Assembly: GCA_964036045.1 (NCBI GenBank) | Contig: OZ038378.1 | Location: forward strand, 173,910,001-173,974,000 | Direction of reading: 5' to 3' | Source: Eutreptiella sp. 'Long Island Sound 2002' | Taxonomy: Eukaryota > Protista > Euglenida | DNA: 64,000 nt | Shown here: in pieces, positions 4,981 to 64,000 of the stretch | Numbering within the stretch: position 1 is the stretch's first letter | Layout: the number at the start of each line of letters is the position of its first letter | Translations under genes and position numbers: made by a program | Notes under the pieces: generated by a model | What the model was told of the DNA's origin: nothing | The model's database searches: none | The model's input: the letters and a program-made list of their open reading frames with translations, nothing else

Positions 4981-5386
4981 CCCTGGGGTGGGGGTAGGTT
5001 CCGGAAAAAACGGATATCACGAGGGGGTTTGCAACCCCCCTCCCCTTTTCACAAACTGCGGTGTGGGGGAGGGGTTTAAGGGCATTTTACGGCGCCACCC
5101 CCCTGTTTTTCTGAATATTGCCCATGGTGACACACTTTTTGATCTCTGATGAGCATTCTTCCAAAAGCCAAAGGGCATCCCCTTAGGGGCTAGGGAAGGG
5201 TCAATGCATTGCCCTCACGCCGTTGTGCGACACAATTCAGTTGTTTCCCAAACCCCCTGTTTATGCCCCTGCACAGCGAAAACCCCTCTTCGCCCCCCCC
5301 CCCCCCCAGCTTTTTTAAAATTTGGATTGGAGGGGGTTTTAATAATGTCATCCGATTTCTGAGAACCCTCCTCCCCACCTCTGGGT
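4981..5386. mobile_element. MITE-like element with imperfect TIRs
   Basis: CCCTGGGGTGGGGGTAGGTTCCGGAAAAAACGGAT at the left resembles the reverse complement of ATCCGATTTCTGAGAACCCTCCTCCCCACCTCTGGG at the right. Confidence 0.4.
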
Positions 5387-5869
5387 GCACCGGTCGCAAA
5401 CACTGTGTGGCAAAGACATTTAAGTAGGTTCGAAGGAAATGAATTGTTCGAGATGTGGAATGGGGACCCAAGGACCCTACTGGAGCACGGGAGGGGCCCA
5501 AGAACCCGGATGCGGCACCCAAGGACCCCAACGCTGCATTGGAAGGGACCCATGGACCATGGGAGGGTACTCAAGGGCCCCAGTGCTGCATGGGAGGGGA
5601 CCCAAAGATCCCAGCATTCTTCATGATGCAAAATGGGAAGGGCCCTTAGAACCCCAGTGGAAAATGAGCTTAGTGTGCACGCACAGGGCGCTGGGGCAAA
5701 TGCCTGAGAAGGGTCAGGCCGTCAACATACAATTGCACTGTAGGAAGCAGCGGGGAACCTCGGTCTGCGGCCCAAGAAACGGTAGCACGTGCCCTCGGTC
5801 AGGTACAAAGTCCGAACAGCAGCCACATAAATGGTTCCTGGGTCGGCAGTTTGAAGGCTCCCTCACTCA

Positions 5870-6524
5870 CCTCCCTCCCCTCCTCCCTTCCTCCCTTCCT
5901 CCCTTCCTCCCTTCCTCCCCTCCTCCCCTCCTCCCTTCCTCCCTTCCTCCCTTCCTCCCTTCCTCCCTTCCTCCCCTCCTCCCTTCCTCCCTTCCTCCCT
6001 TCCTCCCTTCCTCCCTTCCTCCCTTCCTCCCTTCCTCCCCTCCTCCCTTCCTCCCTTCCTCCCTTCCTCCCCTCCTCCCCTCCTCCCTTCCTCCCTTCCT
6101 CCCTTCCTCCCTTCCTCCCTTCCTCCCCTCCTCCCTTCCTCCCTTCCTCCCTTCCTCCCTTCCTCCCCTCCTCCCTTCCTCCCTTCCTCCCCTCCTCCCT
6201 TCCTCCCTTCCTCCCTTCCTCCCTTCCTCCCTTCCTCCCTTCCTCCCTTCCTCCCCTCCTCCCTTCCTCCCTTCCTCCCCTCCTCCCTTCCTCCCCTCCT
6301 CCCTTCCTCCCTTCCTCCCTTCCTCCCTTCCTCCCCTCCTCCCTTCCTCCCTTCCTCCCTTCCTCCCTTCCTCCCCTCCTCCCTTCCTCCCTTCCTCCCT
6401 TCCTCCCTTCCTCCCTTCCTCCCTTCCTCCCCTCCTCCCTTCCTCCCTTCCTCCCTTCCTCCCTTCCTCCCCTCCTCCCTTCCTCCCTTCCTCCCTTCCT
6501 CCCTTCCTCCCTTCCTCCCTTCCT
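5870..6524. repeat. Octamer microsatellite (CCTTCCTC/CCCTCCTC)n, left block
   Basis: About 650 bp of near-perfect polypyrimidine 8-mer, seen directly. Confidence 0.97.
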
Positions 6525-9500
6525 CTCTCCGCAGGGAACCCATAACGCCTCAGGAGAGGCGATGTGTTTACACGGCATTATCACAAATTCCACAGGTACA
6601 GGACGACAACAGACAGTGAAGAGAACCAGAGACGTGGTGCGCACAGGTGCGACAAGCAAGCGAACAAACAAGCAAGATACACAACAGCAAGAAAAGGAAC
6701 ACAGACACAGGCAAAAGGAAATAAGACCAGGCGCATGAACCTGGCACCTGATATGACAGCGCAAAGACCTGCCATAGTACGCAGGCATTAAGACCCGAGA
6801 GATGAAACGGGCAGGCATACCACAGGGCACACAACACACTCCAACACACATCGGCCCAGCGCAACAACACTGGTATGTTACTCAGGACGCACAAGCGGAA
6901 GCTGGCGATCCGGTAACAAGGCCAAGAGGCAGCGATTCGAACACCGCAATGGTGGAGTCGACGCGCATGAGCAGCCAAGCGGCAGCCCGCGAACGGCGTG
7001 ATCATGGCCCGGAAAGCCGAAAAATTCAATGACAGACCGCAGATGCCATAGAGAGAATGAGAGACAATCATAATACACACAATAAACATATGGATACACA
7101 CACAGAGGGGACAAGCACAAAGCACAGGGGGCAAGAAACAACAAGGGGCACCACGCAACCCCACACCCTCATACAGATCCACATGGCGTCGGTCCCAGGG
7201 TCCCCAGGACAGCTCGCCAAAGTCCTCACACTGAATACATTTGTCCAGTGGGGAGACACAGAAGTGCGCCAAGGAAAAGAGCTGATTCAATGGACATCAG
7301 TGGACGATGAAGAAAGATGGGTGGACCTGGCGATTGCCATGCATGAAGGGGCGGTGCCAGCCAAACTATTGGCACTTTACACCATACCAAAGGAGGGACT
7401 CACGGACACAGCCAGGGCTGCCATGGCCCTACGGGACGAACAGGTATGTGTCCAATCCTACCACGCAGCGCTGGAGGCCATCACGGAAGAGCAAGTCACG
7501 GGGCTCCAAAGAACAATGAAATGAGTAGGAGCGGACATGCAGACATTGGAAGGATTGGGAGATCACCACCAGCTGGCGGTAGCACAAGAAGTCCAAAGGA
7601 TGGCCAAAGGAGAAGGAAGTAAAGTGATCGGCAACAAACACCTCCAAGTGGGAGGAGAACAAAGTACACACCAAGCATGGAAGAAGCACATAGCCAACGT
7701 GGCGCGCATGGCTGGATTTGTGGCAAAAAAGCTTGAGGCGGACAAGCCACCAAACAAGAAGCCAGCGGTGGAGCCCGAAGATGAAAGGGACATATACATC
7801 CAGCGACTTCTTGATGAACAAGCAGAGCTGGTAACACAATTGGAAGAGCAAAAGAACAAGCGCCAGACAAGGGCATCGCCGAGCAAAGAGGAGCTGACAG
7901 CAAAGCTGAAGCAAGCAGAAAAGGCAGCGGCAAAAGCACAGAAGGATCAACAAAAAGAAAGACTACGACAGCAGTTGGCGGCGATGGAGGAAGACAGCTC
8001 TGAATCTGAAGATGAGACGGACCGCTTGATGAGACTGCTGCAGAGCAAAAAGGAAAAGCACAAGGCCAAGGACCAAGATCAAGCAGGCGATGTGGGGAAA
8101 AAGAAAGGGGGCGAAAAAGAGAAAGAAACGGATATGAGACGAATGATCCGCAACCTCAAGCGCAAACGAGAGCCGGATGAGGATGAAGAAGATAGCGAGG
8201 ACAACAAATACGTGGACATCAGGGAGGAACAGCAAGTGCTGAAGGTGATACAGCTGACAGGAATACGCTGCAGCAACCCCAACCGAGTGGCACAATTCAT
8301 CAATGAAAAGTTCAAATTCCACAACCTGGCGGACATGTGGCCGGCACTATGTGCTGTGGTGGATGGCAGAAGTGAAAGACCGCTGCTGCTGGCGGTGGAT
8401 GCGGCCAGCTATGAGGCATACATGGGAGGAAGAACGATGAGGCAAGCAGCCCTCAAAGGAGTGGCCATGTCCATGAAAGTAGAAGAGTGCCGATGGGGTA
8501 CAGTGACATGCCACATAGCCAAGGATCAAGCCACACCGGTAACGAGAACAAGGCCAAGCAAAGGAGGAGACCCGGCGATCAACATCACGTCAGCAGGTCT
8601 CAGTGGGACCCTGGGCCGACTTGTTATCCTCACAATGGCGCCACACACACCCACAACACCGTTCATATCTATATGGGGGATGGGGGAACAAGAACACACA
8701 GGGGGACCAGTCATGTTTGATATGCACATAGACGAGCACATGCTGAGACAGGCAGTGCAATATAAAGGGATGTGGGTACAGAAGGGTGGCACCAGGGCCT
8801 ACACAGCGGAGGCAGCGAGTGCAGGCAACAAGCCAAAGCACACCATGCAAGTAGGGGGGAGCCGGCCACTGCACCCAGGGGTACTGGACACCCCGGGAAT
8901 GTCCATGGCATGGGAGTATCGTCGCACCACGAGTGGGCGGCCACAAATGGGCCAAACCCTGAAACAACCACATGGACCAGTGGTGAACCCCCGCATGCAC
9001 CCCTGGATGATCACGGGCAATGAACGCACACAAGTGGCACACAGGGTGGCCATAACCACTCTGGGGCTGGAATGGCACATGAACCCAGATGGTGTCAGCA
9101 GGCACTAGAAGAGCATCCAGCAACGAGGTCGGCCACAACACATTACACTCACAGCACAAGCACACAGGGCGGAGACGGTGCACACAGTACAGTCAGGGGA
9201 CATGGAGTTCGGGGGAGCCATGTTTCGCCTACAAATATCCCACAATTGGTGGGGACACTATGGAGTGCAAAGATACACTGCACAGGGGATCATGGGAACG
9301 GCAGGGGAATGGGTGCTGCCAGCATATGATGTATTTGTACTACAGTGGACCATCCTGCGCAAAAGAGTGTGGCGCAGAAAAGATGGTGGTAAAGGAAGGA
9401 AATGTGCACAGGTGTGGGCGAGCATGAAAGGCAATGAGAGAGCCTTGTTTGAAGAGTGGGCCAGGGCCTGGGGCACAAAGGAGGAGGATATATCCACAAT

Positions 9501-9649
9501 GGAACTGCGATGCACAATAACACACAGCGATGGGCACACCATCTGCAGTGCATACCTGCACCCACAAACACAACTGCCCCAGATGCACTATACGACATCC
9601 ATATGGAGTGGGATGCCTAAGATCTTGTCACAAGGGCGGGGAGGGAAGG

Positions 9650-10245
9650 TAATCATAACAGGCATGTTTGTCAATGCGCAAAGCATGACGGCAAGCAAAT
9701 GGCAAGAGATAAAGACAATGGCACTACGGAACAGAGCCACCCTTGTGGCGGTGGCGGAAATATGGGGGGTGGAGAAACGAGACCCCCTGTTCATGGGGTA
9801 CAAGAGGCGAATATCCAAGCACATGGGGATCGGGAAGGGGATTGGGGTGTGGATGCATACAGATAGGGTCACGCACATGGAGAAAGTGCATGACGACAGA
9901 TGGGCCATGGCTGTGTTGGCACGAATGGCACACCACACCATACTACTCATAGTAGTGCACATGCCACAACGCAATGCACCAGGTGACTACGCCAAGTGCC
10001 TGCAAACACTCACGGCAGTGTACGCATTGCATGCATATGCGCAGTGTATCATATGTGGTGATTGGAACAGATATGTCCCCACACACACACCCACAGCACA
10101 GTGGATGCAGGACAGAAGAATGTACGCGCACACCACAGGACATGAGGCGAGAGACCATAAAGACTGGGTGATCACGTCCCAGGCCATGGAGCCAGATGTG
10201 GTGCACTACAGTGGGGGAGTGGCGGACCATCCGCTGGTGCAGTTT
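9650..10245 (+). pseudogene. Apurinic-type endonuclease (APE/EEP) domain of the LINE
   Basis: Motifs FVNAQ, VAVAEIW, GIGVWM, VVHMP, ICGDWN, KDWVIT and VADHPLV match the conserved N, E, GDFN, D and SDH blocks. Confidence 0.85.
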
Positions 10246-11119
10246 AAGGTGAGGATGGGGAGGGGGTGGGACAGTGACACCGCACCGGTGGGACACAAGC
10301 CCACGGGAGTCAATGCGTGGGGACCGGGGGACAGACAGAGTTGGGGCACGGTGATGGAGTGTATCAGTGGGGCAGGACTCACTGTGCAGCAATGGGTGGC
10401 CATGTACCGGGAGGTAGTGGCAGCAGTGGATGAACTACGGGTGCAAAGGCAAGCAGAACAATCCATCCGAGAGGCCATGCAACAGGAGAGTCAGGGGGGG
10501 GGGAGGGGGGACGGGGAATTGGGTGGACGTGCCGGAGGTGCTCACCATGCTCCATGATAAGGTATGGCTGGCGAAAATGCAAGAACGCCATGTCCTGGAA
10601 CATATACAGCAAACGGGGGCCACCACCAAAATCCTGAGGATCAAGAAAGCAAGCAAACTGGTCCAGCTTACCAAGGTATGGGACACCATGACACACACAG
10701 TGGCCACGGGAGAGAAAGTGAAGGAGGTGGTGGCGAAAGAGGCACAGAGAAAAAACACTCTGCCAACAGCCAACCCAAGTGTGGAATGGGTCAGCAGGCA
10801 CACACCAACGGGAGAAGACAGGGGATGCTATGACAAAGTGACCAGAGTAGAGAGGGCCAGGGTGACAGAAGAGTCAGCAGGTGAGGTGAGACACACGCTG
10901 GGGTACCCCATGCAGTATGGTGAGGGCAGGGAGCTGGCAAGGGCGCAACGCAACCTAACGGTAGCGGCGGATGGGGTGGCGGCAGGGCTGTCCATCCACG
11001 CAGAGCTGGCATACCAGCACATGCAGGCGAGGGTTCTGCTAACCCCCATTGACAAACTGCCAGCAGAATGCACCAGATTTTTGCACCTGCCTTTTGAAAA
11101 ACAGCCTGGTATCGTTTTA

Positions 11120-11870
11120 AACAAACACACACGACCCATCATGCTGGGATCGGCAATACCCAAGCAGGGGCAGAAGCTGCTCCTCATGAGGAGCCAGCGG
11201 TACAACACCCCGGAGGACCTGCACATGTTGCAGCATGCAATCTTAAAGGGCCTGAACTGCCAGCACTTGCGGCGGCTAACCTACACCAGCATCTTCACAC
11301 AGCTAAGGGATACAGGGGAAATCTGGACCTCAGCAATGGGTATGGGCAGACAGACAGGGAACTGGTGACCAAACAGGTGGCGCAAGGGGGGAATCTGCAA
11401 TGGGCATGGAGGCAACAGAGCCAACTGTATGCACGCATCACAGCCTACGTGGTGACGGCCATGGGCCTCTCCATGGCATACTCAGTGACGGGGGGACTGG
11501 TACAGGGTGGGGGCATGGACCCCTATTTTTACATCTGGAATTCTCTGTTTCTGGCAGGACCAGGGATCGGGGAGGGGGGGATCTCACTGAGACTGTGGGA
11601 GTCCATGGCACGCCTACACATACAGTGTGTGGTGGATGATACCACACTATGGGGGGCCACGACGCAAGGCCTACAACACAGCGTGAACAGAACCATAGCA
11701 GTGCTCAAAGCCATGAATGCGGCGTGCAACCCCGACAAGTTTGGCCTCATCCATTATGCATACCGCAACCACAAAATCACACCACGGGCCTCCACCATCC
11801 AAGTGGAAGGAACCACGGTACACGCGGCCAAGCGTACCAAGTACATCAAATTCCTGGGGGGCAATGCAAA
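11120..11870 (+). pseudogene. Reverse transcriptase domain of the LINE (frameshifted at about 11310)
   Basis: TRPIMLGSAIPK (domain 2), LDLSNGY (motif A), GLVQGGGMDPYFY (motif B), CVVDDTTL (motif C, YADD-equivalent), ACNPDK and IKFLG. Confidence 0.85.
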
Positions 11871-12437
11871 TGTGCTCACGGCAGCGGGGGAAGACATCCA
11901 GGGAATAAGGAAACATGCACGCCACATCACAGCACAGACATGCAGGCATGTACCCTCGCTGGCCATATTGAAGGCCCTAGTGGCCGGATGCATACTGGCC
12001 AGATGGCTATACAAGCGCAGTGTGGGGTGGCCGCAGCATGTCAATGGGAGGGGGCATGCAGGGGAAACCAAGACAGTACTGGGCATCATGTGCAACACCA
12101 TGCGGCGAACACTATACCTACCCCTGAAAACCCCCAAGCAATTTTTTGTGCATGCAAAAGGCTTGGCGGTGACACCACCACTGCAAGCATTTTGGGAAAA
12201 CAATCTGATGGACATGTACAAAACAACAAATGCCAAACACCAATGGGTCAGGGAAACCACCCAAATGGCAATCATCCGGCCGTGGGGAGGAATGGGAACG
12301 CTACGGGGGGTGGATACAGACTATGACAAGCTATACCGATGGTGCACGGAGCACCAATGGAAACCGGTGATACACCATGAGGGAGCACAGTGTGACACAT
12401 GGGAATGTCATGCAAGCGTGAAAAGCATACCACACAG

Positions 12438-12880
12438 AGTACTAGTAGTAGTGGGGGATGTGAGTGGCAAACAAGGAGAGACGATATGGGGCCTGGGGGC
12501 AGTGGCCAGTGACCTGCATGGCACCATAGTGTGGGAAGGGCAAGCATGGATGGATCTCATGCATGGCAGCACAGATGTACTGGAAGCCACTGCAGTGGTG
12601 GAGGCATGCAAGGCGATACATAGGGCGACGAGCACCAGAGGGGAGAGCGTCGACCTGGTGCTGGCCTTTTGTGACCACAAAGGGGCGGCAACAGCCCTGG
12701 CACACCACACACTCACACACAGGGGGGGCAACCTCATGGATCGCACAGTGTGTGACTTCTACGACTTAGCACAGAGCATGCCACTCAGAATGGGATGGTG
12801 CCCAGCATAGCACGACACACAGTTACAAGGCGTGCTAGCCATGGCCAATAAGGCAGCGGACACCAAGGCCAAACGAGCAC
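12438..12880 (+). pseudogene. RNase H domain of the LINE
   Basis: D-E-D-D pattern VVGDVS / VLEATAV / AFCDHK / WCPA*H...ANKAADTKAK, with a TAG inside the His loop. Confidence 0.75.
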
Positions 12881-14470
12881 AAAGACACAGGGAGGGCAGC
12901 CACTGGACCATGCCGCAGGCATGGGTGGCAGGGCACACATTCGCATGGTACCACAAAGGGCGTAGGGTGATGGGCATAAAGCGCATGGTCAGGGACAGCA
13001 TGGTGCAGGCAGGAGACTCAGTGCCGTCCGAACAGGGGTACACACCAATGGAGCATGTGCAGGAGAGAAGAGAGGATGCCAGCCTACGACACCAGTGGGC
13101 TCAGTGTACATTTCGCCATCCCAGAGACCAGGCGAGTGCCCTGTTAGCGGCATTTTTTGAAAACACCAGGGACATGTACATAGACACGGAAGGACACGGA
13201 GAATGTGAAGCGTGTAAGGGAACATATGCATGCAGAGTGACACATGCACACCAGAGATGCCCCAACCTGTGGCACAGTGTCGTACAGGGCATGGGGGCTA
13301 TTGCGCGAGTGTGCAAAGAACACACCAAGCGGGGGGTACAAATACGCCAGGTGTGGGGGGGGGGGGGTACAACTCACGGGACAGGGCACCACAGTGCTAC
13401 TGCTATGGGTACCGCCTAAACACAGCTGGTGGTATGAGCAAAGCATGCACACAGAGGGTATCACCCTGTGGCCCATGTACACAGCGTCGGTACCCAGCAC
13501 GGATGTGGTGGCGGCGATGCAAGTGCTCAGTGTGGAGCCCGCACGCCACCTATGTTTACGCATCATGCACACGCAAGGCATGTATATATGGCATACAGCG
13601 ACTGCAGACACAGAGCTGTGGAGAGAGTATTGGGCCCTGCCTGCAGGGCAACACTACGCGGCTATGATGCATACAGATGACAGGTGCAGGTACCAGGAAG
13701 GGGAGGGGCAAGAGACCACCATCCCAGCACCACTGCTATGGGCATTGCTCGCAGCAGTATGGGGAACAAAAGTGCGGATGGCAGCAAAGGGGGTACAGAA
13801 CATGCGGCTGTGCAGCATCCAACATGCAGCGTGGGGTTCCCACAAAAGGATAGGAAGCCTACCCCTAGGGGGCTTACAAAGGGTAACGGCGCCACCCTTT
13901 GGGATGGGCCTGTGCTACATAGCAGTCACCAAGGGAGGAGTGACACCGCAGCAGAAGCAGTGGTATGAGAGGGCAGAAGCCCAATGCAGGGTGATGCGAC
14001 GAGTAGTATGGGAGGGACACGGTGCATACATGGTCATGTGCCTAACCGGGGGGGCCCAGGCGACAGAATGGGCCCATGCAGTGCAACAAGCGATTGACCG
14101 TGTGCAGATGACATAACCTCACTGTCCTGCAAGTGGCAAGGGAGGAGCCAAACGACACCTCCAGTATCCGCAAGCAAGAATGTGGGGCCCCACACCATGG
14201 GGCAACCAGGGAAAAGGGAAGGGTAAAGGGTGGCAATGGTGAAAGCAATGGTGAAAGCAGCGCACATGCACAGACAATAAGCCCGTACGTGGATGCATGG
14301 AAGAATGAATGAATGCGACCGCTCAGTGCGTGCTCCAGTGCGTGTGCCGGGTAAGGGATGAGGAGGGAATGCAGTGATAAGCCGAGGAAACACAGCAAAA
14401 GCAACGGGCCCTGGGCAGACGGTGTAGCGCACCGGAACAAGCGCAGTGCATCCATCCATCCATCCATCCA

Positions 14471-14893
14471 TCCTCCCTTCCTCCCCTCCTCCCCTCCTCC
14501 CTTCCTCCCTTCCTCCCTTCCTCCCTTCCTCCCTTCCTCCCCTCCTCCCTTCCTCCCTTCCTCCCTTCCTCCCTTCCTCCCTTCCTCCCTTCCTCCCTTC
14601 CTCCCTTCCTCCCTTCCTCCCTTCCTCCCTTCCTCCCTTCCTCCCTTCCTCCCCTCCTCCCTTCCTCCCCTCCTCCCTTCCTCCCTTCCTCCCTTCCTCC
14701 CTTCCTCCCTTCCTCCCTTCCTCCCTTCCTCCCCTCCTCCCTTCCTCCCTTCCTCCCTTCCTCCCTTCCTCCCTTCCTCCCTTCCTCCCCTCCTCCCTTC
14801 CTCCCCTCCTCCCTTCCTCCCTTCCTCCCTTCCTCCCTTCCTCCCTTCCTCCCTTCCTCCCTTCCTCCCCTCCTCCCTTCCTCCCTTCCTCCC
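14471..14893. repeat. Octamer microsatellite (CCTTCCTC/CCCTCCTC)n, right block
   Basis: About 420 bp of the same 8-mer as 5870-6524, running into the polypyrimidine tract of the acceptor at 14941. Confidence 0.97.
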
Positions 14894-14941
14894 CCCTCTC
14901 TCCCTCCCGCTTGCCTACTGCACCCCCTTCCTCCTCCCCAG

Positions 14942-15309
14942 GCCGGCTTAGCGGAGGTGCTCGGGACGCTGTGCCAAGTCAACGACCAGTGCACGGAATT
15001 GGTCGTGGAGCGCGACACCCGAGAGAAGGAGCTGCACGACCGTGGGCTGAGGCTGCAGTCCCTGAAGGCCGAGTGTGCTGCGCAGAGGGAACGACTTGCA
15101 GAGGCTTTGGGGACGGGCCGCAGAGGCTATGGATCACAGTTGGCGCTCCTGGAAGCGGAGCGGCATCGGCCACCCACGGGGGTAGTCACCATATGCCACA
15201 CTTCCATCCAACACACGCAGGAGATGTGGACGAAGGACCCGGAGCCAATGCTGTTGGCCGTGCGGCGCTGCTTCGAGATCCTGCGGACGGAGCTCGCGAA
15301 GTGCGACGG
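14942..15309 (+). CDS. Exon: coiled coil plus N-terminal part of a class III nucleotide-cyclase-like domain
   Basis: CCCCAG| acceptor and GG|GTGTGT donor. PPTGVVTICHTSIQHTQEMWTKDPEPMLLAVRRCFEILR resembles the kinetoplastid-type cyclase start (PTGxVTLVFTDIxxSTxLWxxxPxxM). Confidence 0.75.
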
Positions 15310-17024
15310 GTGTGTTCCTCTTTGCAGCCAGTACCAAAGGAGGCCAAAATACAAAGAGTAATTGTGGAAATATTTGGGGAACTTGCAGCGCGGCTGTTCA
15401 GGAGGCTGCAGATTTGGAGCTGAAACATCAAAAGTAGGGTTGTTGCTGCCTGCCGCAATTCAGTGATCGCTAGGCCTGCGGTGCTGCGTGGTGCAGTATA
15501 ATGAAACGTAGGCCTGGAAAGTACAGGGGAACATCGAGGGCATCAAAGTCTGATAACAGAATGCTCAACCGCCAACTGCTGGGCCATGATTAAATTGAAT
15601 TTCAAGGGGCGAACGCAAAGTTTTAAAATGATTCTAGTGCCTTATGCCCCACAATTACAGACATCTTCGCAACAACTTGGGTACGCAATGAATTTCGGGA
15701 CTTTGGGATTTCAGCTTGCAGGAGCAGGTCGCCAGGAATTCAAGCAGGGTCACAGTCTGTGGCCTGAATGGGATGGTAGTCAGGGCTCCCCTACATGAAG
15801 AGTGGCACGTGGACATCGATTGACCTCTTTTCTGTGTCGCTTTCTTGCATGTACAAAAGCGGTTTCCGCATTTTTTCGATGCCAATTGTTTCCCACTCTG
15901 TTGACTTGATCCGCTGTCAAGTCTGTGCTGAAACACCACTCGACCGAAATAGATCCCCCACGGAATTTCGTTCCCCCGTTACGGGCGGTCCCGGTGCACT
16001 GGTGATCCGAATACGACGGGTGTCTGCCTCTGCCCCCAGGGGTAGATGGGGGAGCGCGTGCGACGCACCCTTTTGCCTGTTGCGTGGTGCGCAGTGAGCC
16101 ATCGCATCGGTGGTGCGCGGGGGATGACTATGCGGTCCCCTCATTTTCCCCGCGCGGGCTCAGCCGCTGTTGCATGCGTTGTCTGGACGTGTCGCGCAGC
16201 CCCCGCTCCCCCTTGTGCAAAGGGGATAAGAAAACGAGCCACGACCCGAAACTGTAGCAACACCAAATGGAAATGGGCTGCGGTCTCAAGCAGAACGTTG
16301 TGAGCAAAGCCTCGGTTGAGAGGCGTGGCCCACAGCCTCTCAACCCACTCATAAAACAGGCCATGAGAACTCCTTGACCACAAAAGTTGTGGTGAGAAGA
16401 CTGATTGTCAGGTGGCGTCGCCGTGCCGGGACAAGGCCGTGGTAGCGCCGATGGCGCGGGTGCAGTACCATGGAACGGCAAAATGTCTGTGTTGAGGAGG
16501 CGGAGCACGTGCACCTGCACATTGGTTGTGCACCTGCGCACCGAGCAAGGCACCGCGTTAGCCGAAACATTGGCTAGTGTCAGCTGGTCAGAAATTCTCC
16601 ATTTTTCCAGTCGGCTAGTTCAGCTTGCAAACGTGGGGGAAAGGTGGCGAGGCTGTGGAAAAATGAGAAAAGTGTGGGTTGGGGAAAATGGGGAATTTGT
16701 CTGAAATTGTCGCACTTTTCTACGATTTTCCTCCCATTTCCTACCAATTTCACACATTTCTTCCACATTTCCCATTTTGGCAATTTCTCACAATTTCCCA
16801 TTTCCGCCCATTTTTCTCTGTTTCCCCTTATTCCCCCCCATTTCCCCTCATTTTGCCACCATTTTTCCATTTTCCCCATCTTTCCGAGCCCCTGCAGCTC
16901 GCCGGCTAATTCGGCTGCGGCTAGCGCGGATGCTTGACCGAGGCGATCGATGCATCCCCTGGCCCCTGCCCGGTGCATGTGGCACGTCGTTGATGTGCGA
17001 TACACCCGCGAATTGCAACAACAG

Positions 17025-20245: not shown

Positions 20246-20914
20246 GAGGCGCGGACCACGTACCGATCAGAGAAGGAAGAGCTGATGTTGGAGGTGCGCG
20301 ACATGGCACGGAAGCTGAACAAGCAAGTGTCCCTGAATCGGAAGTTGGACGCAGCAGTGGGGGAGCTGAAGCAGCGGCTTAATGAAGAACACGTCCCATT
20401 GGACATGGGCTCTGACAGTGAGTCCAACCATAGTGCCCGAAGCGCTGGGAATGCGTCTGACACGGGGGCGTCACGACGCCCAGGCAAGGGCCCGGACGAC
20501 AGCGCTGCCCAAGCGCAACCCAACGGGGAACCCCTGGACAAGGTTTCCGAGGGCGACGGTGCCCCAGCTGACGCGGATGCGGATTCATGCGAGGAGGATG
20601 CGGATCCGCGGGAAGAGGATGCGGATCCGCCGGAGGAGGATGCGGATCCGCGGGAGGAGGGTGCGGATCCGTGGGAGGAGGATGCGGATTCGCAGGAGAG
20701 GGATACACCGCAAGGTGAGCCTTTGGTGGGCGGAAGCACTGGTGCAGATGCCGCGCCCGATGCTGCGCATGGGCACTGCACTGAGAAATGCCAAGAGTGT
20801 CAGGATCACGCACTGCAGGTGGAGCACCTCCAACAGCTGTGCGCCGACAAGGACAAGGCCTATTGGATTGCGCAGAAGGAGCTTGCCAGCCTCCGGCAGC
20901 AGCTGGACTCCAAG
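20246..20914 (+). CDS. Exon: coiled coil and acidic repeat region
   Basis: CCCCAG| acceptor, phase 0 join LREQHE|EARTTYRSEKEELMLEV. It ends at QLDSK with a putative GC donor (AAG|GCATGG). Confidence 0.7.
20591..20695 (+). repeat. 21-bp coding minisatellite (EEDADP[R/P/W]) x5
   Basis: GAGGAGGATGCGGATCCGCGG units lie inside the exon. Confidence 0.9.

Positions 20915-48621: not shown

Positions 48622-48711
<90 letters not shown>
48622..48711. repeat. (TG)n microsatellite
   Basis: About 45 perfect dinucleotide units. Confidence 0.98.
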
Positions 48712-51101: not shown

Positions 51102-51107
51102 GGGGGG

Positions 51108-51151
<44 letters not shown>

Positions 51152-56384: not shown

Positions 56385-56750
56385 GGTGTTGGTGTTGGTG
56401 TTGGTGTTTCTGTTGTCATTGGTGTTGGTGTTGGTGTTGGTGTTGGCATTGGTAGTTGGTCGTTGGTGTTGGCGTTGGCGTTGGTGTTGGTGTTGGCGTT
56501 TCTGTTGGTGCTGGTGTTGGTGTTGGTGTTGGCGTTGGCATTGGCGTTGGTGTTGGCGTTGGTGTTGGCGTTGGCATTGGCGTTGGTGTGTTGGTGTTGG
56601 CGTTGACGTTGGTGTTGATGCTGGTGTTGGTGGTGGCGTTGGTGTTGGTGTTGGTGTTGGTGTTGGTGTTGGTGTTGGTGTTGGTGTTGCCGTTGGTGTT
56701 AGTATTGGTGTTGGTTTTGGCGTTGGTGTTGTGTTGGTGCTGGCGTTGAG
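56385..56750. repeat. (GGTGTT/GGCGTT)n hexamer microsatellite in an EamA intron
   Basis: Seen directly. Confidence 0.95.
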
Positions 56751-61209: not shown

Positions 61210-63810
61210 TGGTGGCCAGGGGGCCTTATACCTTACCCAGCTGGGCGGGACTCCCTGTCCCCCCGGCCGGTGGGCCCGCGCCGCTGGAGGTTCCCGCCCC
61301 CCGTGGTCGCTCACCAGACAGCGACCACCGCCTGGGCGGGGCTCCCCGTCCCCCCAACCGGCAGGCCCGCGCCGATGGGGACTACCATCCCCCACAGGCA
61401 CTCTTAAGGCAGCGACCAGCGCCTGGGTAGCACTCCCTGTTCCCCCAAGGTCTCCGGTACTGCTTGCTTACCCTGCCTGCTTGCTTCCCCCAAGGACTAG
61501 TTGGGGTAGACGGCCAGGTAGACGGGTATAAGATGGGACCCGTCTTATACCAGTGGAGGCGAGGACTTAGTACGGTCCCCGGACCCAAAAAACCAGCCCG
61601 GACCTCTATGGATGGGAGAACCTGACGCGGGGACAACCTGACAAGACACATCTCGGTAGCGACCACCGGTGGGCCCGCGCCAATGGGGGCTGCTATCCCC
61701 CTGAGGCGCTCTTTAGGCAGCGACCACCAGCTGGTGGGCGCGCGCCGATGGGGGCCCCAGGCGCTGTTTAGGCAGCGACCGCCTATTGGGCAGGACTCCC
61801 CGTCCCCCCAGCCAGTGGGCCCGCGCGGATGGGGGCTGCCATCCCCCTCGGGCGCTCTTTAGGTAGCAACCACTAGCCGGTGGGCCCGCGCCGATGGGGG
61901 CTGCGTCCCCCCAGCCAGTGGGCCCATGCGGATGGGGGCTGCCATCCCCCTCAGGCGCTCTTTAGGCAGCAACCACTAGCCGGTGGGCCCGCGCCGATGG
62001 GGGCTGTGTCCCCCCCAAGCGCTGTTTAGGCAGCGACCGCCTCCTGGGATGGACTCCCCGTCCCCCCAGCTGGTGAGCCCGCGCTGACGGGGGCTGCCGT
62101 CCCGCACGGGCACTCTTAAGGCAGTAAATACCTCTTGGGCAAGACCCCCCGTCCCCCCAGCCTGTGAGCCCGCGCCGTTTTGGGGGCTGCCGTCCCCAGA
62201 CGGCGCTCTCTCGGCAGCAATCACCTCCTGAGCAAGACTCCTTTCCCCCCAGCCGGTGGACCCGCGCCGATGTGGGTTGCCATCCCCAGTAGGCGCTCTT
62301 TAGGCACCGGCCACCGCCTGGGCGGGACTCCCGCCCCTGGGCCCGCGCCAATGGAGGCTGCCATCCCCGGCAGGCGCTCTTAAGCCGAGAACCACCTCCT
62401 GGGCAGGAACCCCGTCCCCCCGGCCTGTGAGCTCGCGCCGGTTTGGGGGCTGCTATCCCCACACGGTGCCCTCTAGGCAGCAACCACCTCTTGGGCGGGA
62501 CTCTCCGTCCCCCTAGCCACTGGACCCGTGCCGATGGGGGTTGCCATCCCCTGCAGGCGCTCTTTAGGCAGCGGCCACCGCCTGGGCGGGACTCCCGCCC
62601 CTGGGCCCGCGCCAATGGAGGCTGCCATCCCCTGCAGGCGCTCTTAAGCCGAGAACCACCTCCTGGGCAGGAACCCCGTCCCCCCGGCCTATGAGCTTGC
62701 GCCGGTTTTGGGGGCTGCTATCCCCACACGGTGCCCTCTAGGCAGCAACCACCTCTTGGGCGGGACTCTCCGTCCCCCTAGCCACTGGACCCGTGCCGAT
62801 GGGGGTTGCCATCCCCTGCAGGCGCTCTTTAGGCAGCGGCCACCGCATGGGTGGGATTCCCCGTCCCCCCCGGCCCATGGGCCCGCGCCAATGGGGGCTG
62901 CCGTCCCCCAGGCGCTCTTTGGTCGGCGACCGCCTCCTAGGCTGGACTCCCCGTCCCCCCAAACGGTGGGCCCGCACCATTGTGGGGGCTGCTATCCCCA
63001 GCAAGCACTCTCTAGGCAGCCACCACCTCCTAGACGGGGCTCCCCGTCCCCCCAGCCGGTGGGCCCGCGCCGATGGGGGCCGCCATCCCCCACAAGCGCT
63101 CTTAAGGTGGAGACCACCTTCTGGACGGGGCACCCTGTCCGCTCAGTTGGTGGGCCCAAGGCGTTGTGGGGACTGCTATCCCCAGCAGGCGCTCTCTAGG
63201 CAACGACCACCTCCTGGGCGAGACTCCCTGTCCCCCAGCTGGTGGGCCCGCACCGTTTTGGGGGCTTCTATCCCCCACAGGCACTCTTTAGGCAGCGATC
63301 ACTCCCTGGGCGGGACTCCCCGTCCCCCTAGCCGGTGGGCCCGCGCCGATGGGGGCTGCCATCCCCCATAGGCGCTCTTGAGGCAACGACCGCTGCTGGG
63401 CGGGACTCCTTGTCCCCGCAGTTTGTGGGCCCGCGCTGTTGAGGGCTGCTATTCCCCGATAGGAGCTCTCTTGACAGCTACCGCCGCGTGGGCGGGACTC
63501 CCCGTCCCCCCAGTTGATGGGCCCTCGCCGTTGGGGGCTGATGTCCCCTTGTAGGCGCTCTTTGGGCTGTGACCGCCGATTGGGTAGGACATCCCAGCCG
63601 GTGAGCTTGCGCTGTGTGGGGGCTACTATCCCCCGTTGCGCGCTTTTAAGACAGCGGCCGCCACATGGGCACGACTCCCCGTCCTCCCATCTAGTGGGCC
63701 TGCGCTGTAGAAGACTTCTACCCCCATGGGCGCTCTTTAGGCAGCGGCCACCACCTGGGCGGAACCATTTGTCCTCCAAGCCGGTGGGCTAGTACCATTG
63801 GGGGGTGCTA
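61210..63810. repeat. GC-rich satellite, monomer of about 90 bp with a local 265-bp higher-order unit
   Basis: Consensus of about GGTGGGCCCGCGCCGATGGGGGCTGCCATCCCC..GGCGCTCTTTAGGCAGCGACCACCTCCTGGGCGGGACTCCCCGTCCCCCCAGCC. Identical blocks start at 62443 and 62708. Confidence 0.92.
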
Positions 63811-64000
63811 TCCCCCCATAGGCGCTCCGTAAGTTTGTGCCGTGCCCTTTGCAGGGCCATGTCGCGATAAGTATACTGGCGCGTAGACCCCTAAGGTCGG
63901 CCGCCGCAGGCCATCCCCGCGAGTGCTGGAGAAGGGGCCGGCGCCCCAGCACTGGGCGGCCCGGTGTTTAGGGAACGTGGTGCCCATGGATGAGCGGCCC

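Follow-up and report, generated by a model that had tools for sequence, protein, structure and literature searches.

The window considered here, a stretch of 64,000 nucleotides from a euglenid alga (G000:C1:173,910,001-173,974,000 in the surveyed genome, which is labelled G000 and comprises 2.28 Gb), carries a copy of a non-LTR (long terminal repeat) retrotransposon at 6526-14472 on the (+) strand, 7,947 bp in length and situated within a (CCTTCCTC)n array. This copy is a dead member of a young family of long interspersed nuclear elements (LINEs). Judging from the junctions of its genomic relatives, the family is very probably microsatellite-specific: it appears to integrate specifically into C-rich polypyrimidine arrays by target-primed reverse transcription.

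The specificity is apparent from the flanks of the copies. Junctions were read at 20 5' and 20 3' ends and then at 10 more of each, yielding 27 copies with both flanks. C-rich polypyrimidine repeats surround all two-ended copies (27/27) and follow all 3' ends read (31/31), and the sense strand of the element lies on the pyrimidine strand in each of these 27 pairs and 31 3' ends. Flanks of 50 nt that are at least 90% pyrimidine are found in 22/27 copies per side, compared to a fraction of 0.0001 of the background 50-mers of the window, and their mean C content is 66-70%. The most common target is (CCCT)n; (CCCCT)n, (CCT)n, (CTCTCC)n, (CCCCTG)n and the octamer of the window are also used, and complex C-rich units of 10-38 nt serve likewise. 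Because the repeat type is identical on both sides of each copy and yet varies from copy to copy, from 3-mers to 38-mers, the arrays must have existed before the insertions. Truncated copies conform to the same picture: a 5'-truncated copy at C16:22.788M is joined straight to C-rich repeat, and three others (L062, L066 and L067) have 3' flanks of the same kind. The first-pass annotation of the window had proposed that the family targets the pyrimidine octamer. Targeting of pyrimidine microsatellites is borne out, and tabulation of the flanks revealed no random sequence among the 27 two-ended copies, all of which sit in C-rich pyrimidine repeats; the octamer as the specific target is not, since it is one variant among several and (CCCT)n is the most common. 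There is also a slim chance that the protein recognises a structure, perhaps triplex- or i-motif-prone C-rich DNA, rather than a motif, which, if true, would explain the acceptance of many unrelated unit sequences.

Three copies (L032 at C1:146.86M, L091 at C1:64.29M and L068 on C1187) reside in (C7-9TAC)n arrays with mutually similar outer flanks: the upstream flank ('gatagtatgcacgaa..tcgcc') is common to one pair and the downstream flank ('ggctcgcttcgctcgacagacgg') to another. This array seems to be borne by another repeated element that has been struck repeatedly.

The junctions are also precise. Target-site duplications (TSDs), measured as the longest suffix of the 5' flank that equals a prefix of the 3' flank, are 9-14 nt long, mostly 12-13 nt, in 19/27 pairs, irregular targets included (examples are CCGCCATCGCCC, CCCCTTTGATCCC, CTGGACCCCCTCC and CCTCCCTCGCTC), and they invariably end right before TCTCCG; in the window, the 11-nt TSD is CTCCCTTCCTC (6515-6525 and 14473-14483). 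At the 3' end, the tail consists of exactly 6 CATC units in 25/31 copies and the following base is C in 31/31. CATC differs from the target unit CCTC at a single base, and the tail enters (CCTC)n in register: the sequence most commonly following it is CCTCCCTCCC, with CC(T/C)CCC in register. At the 5' junction, the assignment of bases to element or target is ambiguous by 1-4 nt.

Three properties can be read directly off the junctions, namely the size of the TSDs, the registers and the orientation; from these we infer a nick site and a pairing that could facilitate integration in the following manner: The endonuclease would nick the purine (bottom) strand, in (CCCT)n presumably between two GAGG units. 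The freed GAGG-type 3' end may then pair, at three of four bases and in register, with the (CAUC)6 tail of the RNA and prime cDNA synthesis. The top strand is cut ~12 nt (11-14) downstream, as the TSDs show. Finally, the first bases of the element, TCTCC, may pair with the target and thereby generate the exact, full-length 5' junction, as suggested by the junction ambiguity of 1-4 nt and the high full-length share of 55/71.

The boundaries of the window copy derive from the same comparison. Common to all 55 genomic 5' ends is TCTCCGCAGGGAACC, and the TSDs stop right before TCTCCG; hence, the element starts at 6526. The initial annotation had drawn the left boundary after the AG at 6533-34, which is 9 nt off and places an internal AG at the edge. 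The junction string that it had reported, pyrimidine tract-CTCTCTCCGCAG-GGAACC, is indeed present at 6520-6540. TCTCCGCAG lies outside the TSD and is shared by the 55 genomic 5' ends (≤2 mismatches); by this comparison it represents, including the AG at 6533-34, the conserved 5' end of the element itself and not of the host. Similarly, the ATG at 6562, previously described as the first in-frame ATG, opens only an upstream open reading frame (uORF) of 59 codons, and the main open reading frame (ORF) begins at 7057. Other parts of the annotation agree with what is found: Tandem Repeats Finder (TRF) places the octamer (CCTTCCTC)n, with CCCTCCTC variants, directly on both sides of the element (5858-6525, 83 units, and 14471-14908, 55 units), the (CATC)n tail runs into the right array with (CATC)6 at 14449-14472, and the body of ~7.9 kb encodes an apurinic/apyrimidinic endonuclease-type (APE) domain, a reverse transcriptase (RT) and an RNase H in the order claimed, according to folds and an RT profile. 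The sequence between the arrays is A-rich and T-poor, with an AT skew of ~+0.3. The features are as follows.

5858-6525, (+): target microsatellite, left block (CCTTCCTC)n, ~83 units (TRF, sequence, TSD search)
6515-6525, (+): left TSD copy CTCCCTTCCTC, 11 nt (TSD search)
6526-14472, (+): LINE copy (boundaries from 27 aligned copy pairs and TSDs; pairwise alignment)
6526-6534, (+): element-terminal motif TCTCCGCAG, pyrimidine-rich like the target and containing AG 6533-34 (shared 5' ends, TSDs)
6526-7056, (+): 5' untranslated leader, 531 nt (ORF lists)
Within the leader, (+): uORF of 59 codons, ATG 6562, stop 6736-6738 (ORF lists)
7057-14116, (+): remnant of a single 2,355-aa ORF (ORF list of the window compared to the intact ORF L071:843-7910)
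9637-10264, (+): predicted APE-type endonuclease of endonuclease/exonuclease/phosphatase (EEP) fold, ORF aa ~861-1070, with GDWN at 10054 and DH at 10219 (AF2 model and PDB matches)
11123-12304, (+): predicted reverse transcriptase, ORF aa ~1356-1754, with QGG at 11491 and VVDD at 11626 (profile of relatives)
12409-12907, (+): predicted RNase H1-like domain, ORF aa ~1789-1955, with D (12445 region), E at 12577 and D at 12664 (AF2 model)
13198-13260, (+): Cys/His cluster C-x2-C ... H-x4-C, 3' of the RNase H (read off the translation)
14449-14472, (+): 3' tail (CATC)6 (TRF)
14473-14908, (+): target microsatellite, right block (CCTTCCTC)n (TRF; TSD search)
14473-14483, (+): right TSD copy, 11 nt (TSD search)

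The window copy is 97.4% identical to an intact copy in pairwise alignment, and its ORF is split into at least six reading-frame pieces. Relative to the intact copy it has acquired indels near 10494 (+1), 11322 (-13) and 13355 (+4), and the frame is further interrupted by stop codons at 7522-7524, 9106-9108 and 12808-12810; these three frameshifts and three stops mark it as dead.

The family to which it belongs seems well preserved. A genome search with the central 3.6 kb added 40 or more copies at 95-99% identity, and family copies are 95-100% identical. Exact-pattern counting yields 55 5' ends (with CTCCGCAGGGAACCCATAACGCC, ≤2 mismatches) and at least 71 3' ends (GCACCGGAACAAGCGCAGTG followed by CATCCATCC, ≤3 mismatches); thus, about three quarters of the copies reach the 5' end (55 compared to 71 3' ends), a high proportion for a LINE. 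The intact copy (L071, G000:C15:328,011-335,9xx) consists of a 531-nt leader followed by a single ORF of 2,355 aa. This uninterrupted ORF, together with copies that are up to 99-100% identical, gives the family the look of recent activity, and it is probably a young, still active autonomous LINE. The hallmarks of this class are present: LTRs are missing, the tail is a simple repeat, (CATC)5-8, TSDs flank the copies, and some copies are 5'-truncated.

A sister subfamily occurs in (CCT)n at C1:33278071-33279671 (L092) and C3:55733543-55735543 (L093). The two places are duplicates and reflect one event, the only full 5' end of the sister subfamily in the genome; here, the copy stands head-to-tail behind the 3' end of another copy, inside the (CCT)n array. 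Its leader is 72-73% identical to that of the main family, and it shares the TCTCCGCA start and the (CATC)n tail. The first ~50 nt, at ~87% identity between the subfamilies, are better conserved than the rest of the leader (72-73%), which would fit a functional 5' end.

Short copies that retain both termini and have lost most of the interior were observed at C13:29185824-29189564 (3.7 kb; L094, L062), C22:17931394-17932773 (1.4 kb) and C11:26408479-26410885 (2.4 kb); in L094, the first ~46 nt are fused directly to mid-ORF sequence. They may be deletion derivatives, which have perhaps retained the ability to be mobilised. Family copies also occur in tandem within single arrays (C25:6022614-6045127 and C25:12827218-12867658), and since the junctions at C25:6.03M and 6.045M are identical, at least some of these tandems arose by unequal exchange and not by repeated insertion.

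The encoded protein comprises an N-terminal region of 860 aa, followed by the APE endonuclease, the RT, the RNase H and a Cys/His-containing C-terminal region. In an AlphaFold (AF2) model of ORF aa 801-1200, the predicted local distance difference test (pLDDT) is 75-95 across aa 861-1070, and the model matches the endonuclease (EN) structures of human LINE-1 ORF2p, TRAS1 and R1Bm in the PDB with E values of 1e-9 to 1e-11. Exo_endo_phos (PF03372) is detected in a relative (P0048) at 1.9e-5, above the cut-off, and the asparagine of the GDxN motif is invariant in the endonuclease alignment of relatives (A1). For the RT region, a profile built from relatives (A2) matches RT structures of R2 retrotransposons at 1.4e-10 and, at E≤1, none of human L1 ORF2p; the E value of RVT_1 is 0.24 for the intact protein as opposed to 9e-7 for a relative (P0002). 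For aa 1700-2050, a Foldseek search with the AF2 model finds RNase H1 structures (E 6e-7, TM to target reaching 0.79), and the RNase H D and E are invariant in the corresponding alignment (A3); by sequence, a profile of the RNase H region gave no match, nor was there a Pfam RNase H match. Residues of catalytic type are kept among the relatives, i.e., the N of GDWN, the DH, the VVDD and the D/E/D of the RNase H, and a feature search of the ESM Atlas reaches clusters carrying Exo_endo_phos, RVT_1 and RNase_H. Based on fold for the APE and RNase H domains and on a profile for the RT, the element is thus classified as an APE-type, RNase H-bearing LINE. The Cys/His cluster, for which a family search gave no match, is likely the C-terminal zinc knuckle that is common in LINE ORF2 proteins.

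By sequence, this lineage appears very divergent. Pfam searches with the ORF pieces of the window and the intact ORF detected nothing beyond RVT_1 at E 0.24, phmmer found no match of the protein in the PDB, and a search of the ESM Atlas with the N-terminal 800 aa returned no usable match. An exhaustive HMMER scan of 1.84 billion representative proteins produced no more than 146 matches at E≤0.001, almost all of them short unnamed fragments of ENA assemblies. A word-index search with the RT profile adds one named protein, from fish, at 9e-7. Two of the relatives, P0157 and P0159, are 60-66% identical.

How the exact 5' end of the element is formed can be envisaged in different ways. The absence of donor-array units between the TSD and TCTCCG favours an RNA that starts at TCTCCG, as it would from an internal promoter. 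Alternatively, the element may be co-transcribed from the upstream host sequence or array, its 5' end being made later by a self-cleaving ribozyme or by a switch of the cDNA to the target at TCTCC. Target-specific LINEs such as R2 and R1 commonly lack promoters and rely on co-transcription, and R2, RTE and L1Tc form their 5' ends by self-cleaving ribozymes. The target-like terminal TCTCC with its 1-4 nt of junction ambiguity and the better preservation of the first ~50 nt would accord with such a scenario. On the other hand, the informative complex targets contain no donor microsatellite units between TSD and TCTCCG, shuffled sequences fold as well as the first 161 nt (z -0.49), and an Rfam search of the 5' 650 nt at E≤10 found no hepatitis delta virus (HDV)-like ribozyme, the single match being to the hairpin ribozyme at chance level (E 4.2). 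Later formation of the 5' end from a longer transcript is thus rather unlikely, albeit the strongest of the competing explanations. An HDV-like ribozyme in particular was considered and dropped as unsupported, in the light of the missing Rfam match and the unremarkable 5' fold, although a ribozyme of a novel kind may still be present; across the whole window, Rfam detected neither a ribozyme nor any other RNA family.

A different role for the 5' junction was put forward in the first-pass annotation: a promoterless element would be co-transcribed with its host, and the upstream tract together with the CAG at 6532-6534 would act as acceptor for the spliced leader (SL), resulting in a capped SL-GGAACCC mRNA. 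The organism is of the trans-splicing kind. The euglenid spliced leader ...TTTCTGAGTGTCTATTTTTTTTCG has been published for Eutreptiella (PMC3621762), and the leader sequence (24 nt, ≤1 mismatch) is found at 5,458 genomic places, dispersed and on both strands, compared to 0 for the reversed control; these counts imply that the organism uses this leader and that retro-copies of trans-spliced RNAs are very numerous. Every insertion puts a long pyrimidine tract directly 5' of the conserved TCTCCGCAG|G, and because the sense strand of the element is T-poor, the target would supply the only pyrimidine tract; moreover, in the window, the element and an apparent host exon at 14942-15361 share the same strand. 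Nevertheless, new copies retain the 8-9 nt 5' of the AG, so that the template for transposition must have been unspliced at this site. In the hypothetical spliced product, leader ...TTTTTTTTCG would be joined to GGAACCCATAACG at window position 6535; a genome search for this one AG junction, with the 3' end of the leader joined to GGAACCCATAACGCC at ≤2 mismatches, yielded none, i.e., 0 copies with the SL 3' end joined to GGAACCC versus 55 unspliced 5' ends. Nor is the acceptor itself strictly conserved: the sister subfamily keeps CTCTCCGCA with the AG G replaced by C (CGCAC versus CGCAG), leaving CAC at the acceptor site, and the AG is lost in 4/55 family copies.

Trans-splicing of the transposing RNA by means of host tract and element AG finds no support in these data, as the element extends 8-9 nt upstream of the AG and the junction counts are 0 versus 55, and the acceptor model as a whole is doubtful at best. 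What could survive of it, with an equally slim chance, is a division of labour suggested by the sequence: read-through transcripts trans-spliced at the AG would become translatable SL mRNAs that do not transpose, and unspliced RNA would template the insertions. If true, the choice of target would be the family's answer to the promoter problem that a LINE faces in a trans-splicing organism: landing in sense orientation in a polypyrimidine array and contributing its own CAG, the element would create a strong acceptor and obtain a capped SL mRNA from any read-through transcript, and only unspliced RNA, with its TCTCC end pairing with the target, would yield new full-length insertions.

Several points weigh against targeted integration as described above. 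The 27 full pairs and 31 3' ends were read out of at least 71 copies, and some copies are segmental or tandem duplicates (C25:6.03M and 6.045M; C4:25.12M and C1092), which reduces the sample to ~25 independent events. Since CC is common to tail and target, the nick can be placed only to within 2 nt. In addition, neither the N-terminal 860 aa nor the C-terminal 400 aa gave a match to a family or in the atlas. The opposite notion, that there is no targeting and that the repeats are the element's own tail, a post-insertion expansion or a passive build-up in repeat-rich, low-recombination DNA, is already contradicted by the paired flanks and TSDs and retains practically no probability: although CATC is one base away from CCTC, making a tail-seeded expansion conceivable, and some copies are arranged in tandem in one array (C25:6.02-6.05 Mb, C25:12.83-12.87 Mb), the repeats are found on both sides and thus also 5' of the element start, the unit type is consistent within a copy and different between copies, TSDs made of target sequence flank the element, the orientation is invariant (27/27), and the junctions are exact and in register.

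LINEs with comparable features are known from other organisms. In ingi/L1Tc, the well-studied APE LINEs of trypanosomatids and hence of Euglenozoa, APE, RT and RNase H are encoded in one long ORF together with a zinc-finger region at the C-terminus; these elements generate target duplications of the 12-bp class, have a poly(A) end and, at the 5' end, the Pr77 promoter/ribozyme, and show no microsatellite specificity. The euglenid family resembles them, by domain description, in the order of domains in a single ORF, the ~12-bp target duplication and the euglenozoan host; it differs in its (CATC)6 tail, in its microsatellite target and in the lack of a ribozyme match in the Rfam search of the 5' region. 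RNase H-bearing architectures are found in the I, Tad1, LOA and ingi groups of LINEs. SLACS and CRE of kinetoplastids use a restriction-like endonuclease to insert into SL RNA genes. They share with the euglenid family, as does CZAR, that they are retrotransposons of organisms with SL trans-splicing, whereas the euglenid family has an APE and a microsatellite target, and SL-headed 5' ends number 0 versus 55 unspliced ones.

The APE LINEs specific for microsatellites include Waldo, (ACAY)n; Mino, (AC)n; Kibi, (TC)n; Koshi, (TTC)n; and Dong, (TAA)n; Kibi and Koshi belong to the Tx1/L1 group and were found in fish, and Waldo and Mino belong to the R1 clade of insects (PMC3812793). Kibi and Koshi are similar to the euglenid family in that they occupy polypyrimidine/polypurine microsatellites, with the same array on both sides and in a fixed orientation; in contrast, the euglenid family has a looser and C-rich target, an RNase H, a single giant ORF and a euglenid host. 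Waldo and Mino likewise combine an APE with microsatellite targets, and the EN fold of the euglenid family matches R1Bm and TRAS1 EN as well as L1 EN, but the target motif and the host kingdom are different, elements of the R1 clade have two ORFs compared to one here, and no sequence relationship is detectable beyond generic domains. The class of microsatellite-targeting APE LINEs is known; the euglenid family differs from its members in a new and looser class of target, in the in-register tail and in the single giant RNase H-containing ORF, in a very divergent lineage.

C-rich polypyrimidine repeats, (CCCT)n and relatives, and a euglenid host thereby join the short list of microsatellite targets of APE LINEs. 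For Euglena gracilis, the published assembly gives automated repeat classes only, with LINEs at 1.5% and unknown repeats at 32.7%, and no family-level description of such a LINE was found in the paper (PMC11252322). The large 'unknown' share may in part be explained by lineages like this one, which is too divergent for standard family models. With its sharp target, in-register tail, TSDs and apparently recent activity, the family would lend itself well to studies of how repeats are read by an APE LINE, and it could possibly serve as a safe-site integration tool for Euglena.

In the surroundings of the window copy, the downstream flank is unique, and no empty paralogous or allelic site for this locus was found in the assembly. 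The upstream flank includes, at 5100-5400, part of an old repeat that is dispersed in the genome (more than 250 candidate copies, ~72-78% identity). Downstream, (+) strand open frames at 14942-15361 and near 20250-20900 look like coiled-coil exons. At five places, namely C15 (L056), C18 (L076), C24:21.85M (L073), C869 (L063) and 14909-14941 of the window, the array ends 0-30 nt from a CAG and is followed by unique sequence, an arrangement as expected if the arrays served, on the sense strand of genes, as pyrimidine tracts at the 3' ends of introns or outrons. Further simple repeats of the window are a (TG)45 run at 48622-48711, a 48-nt G run at 51102-51149, a (GGTGTT)60 array at 56385-56748 and a GC-rich satellite of ~2 kb at 61801-63827, which has a unit of 91-92 bp and higher-order periods of 183 and 264.

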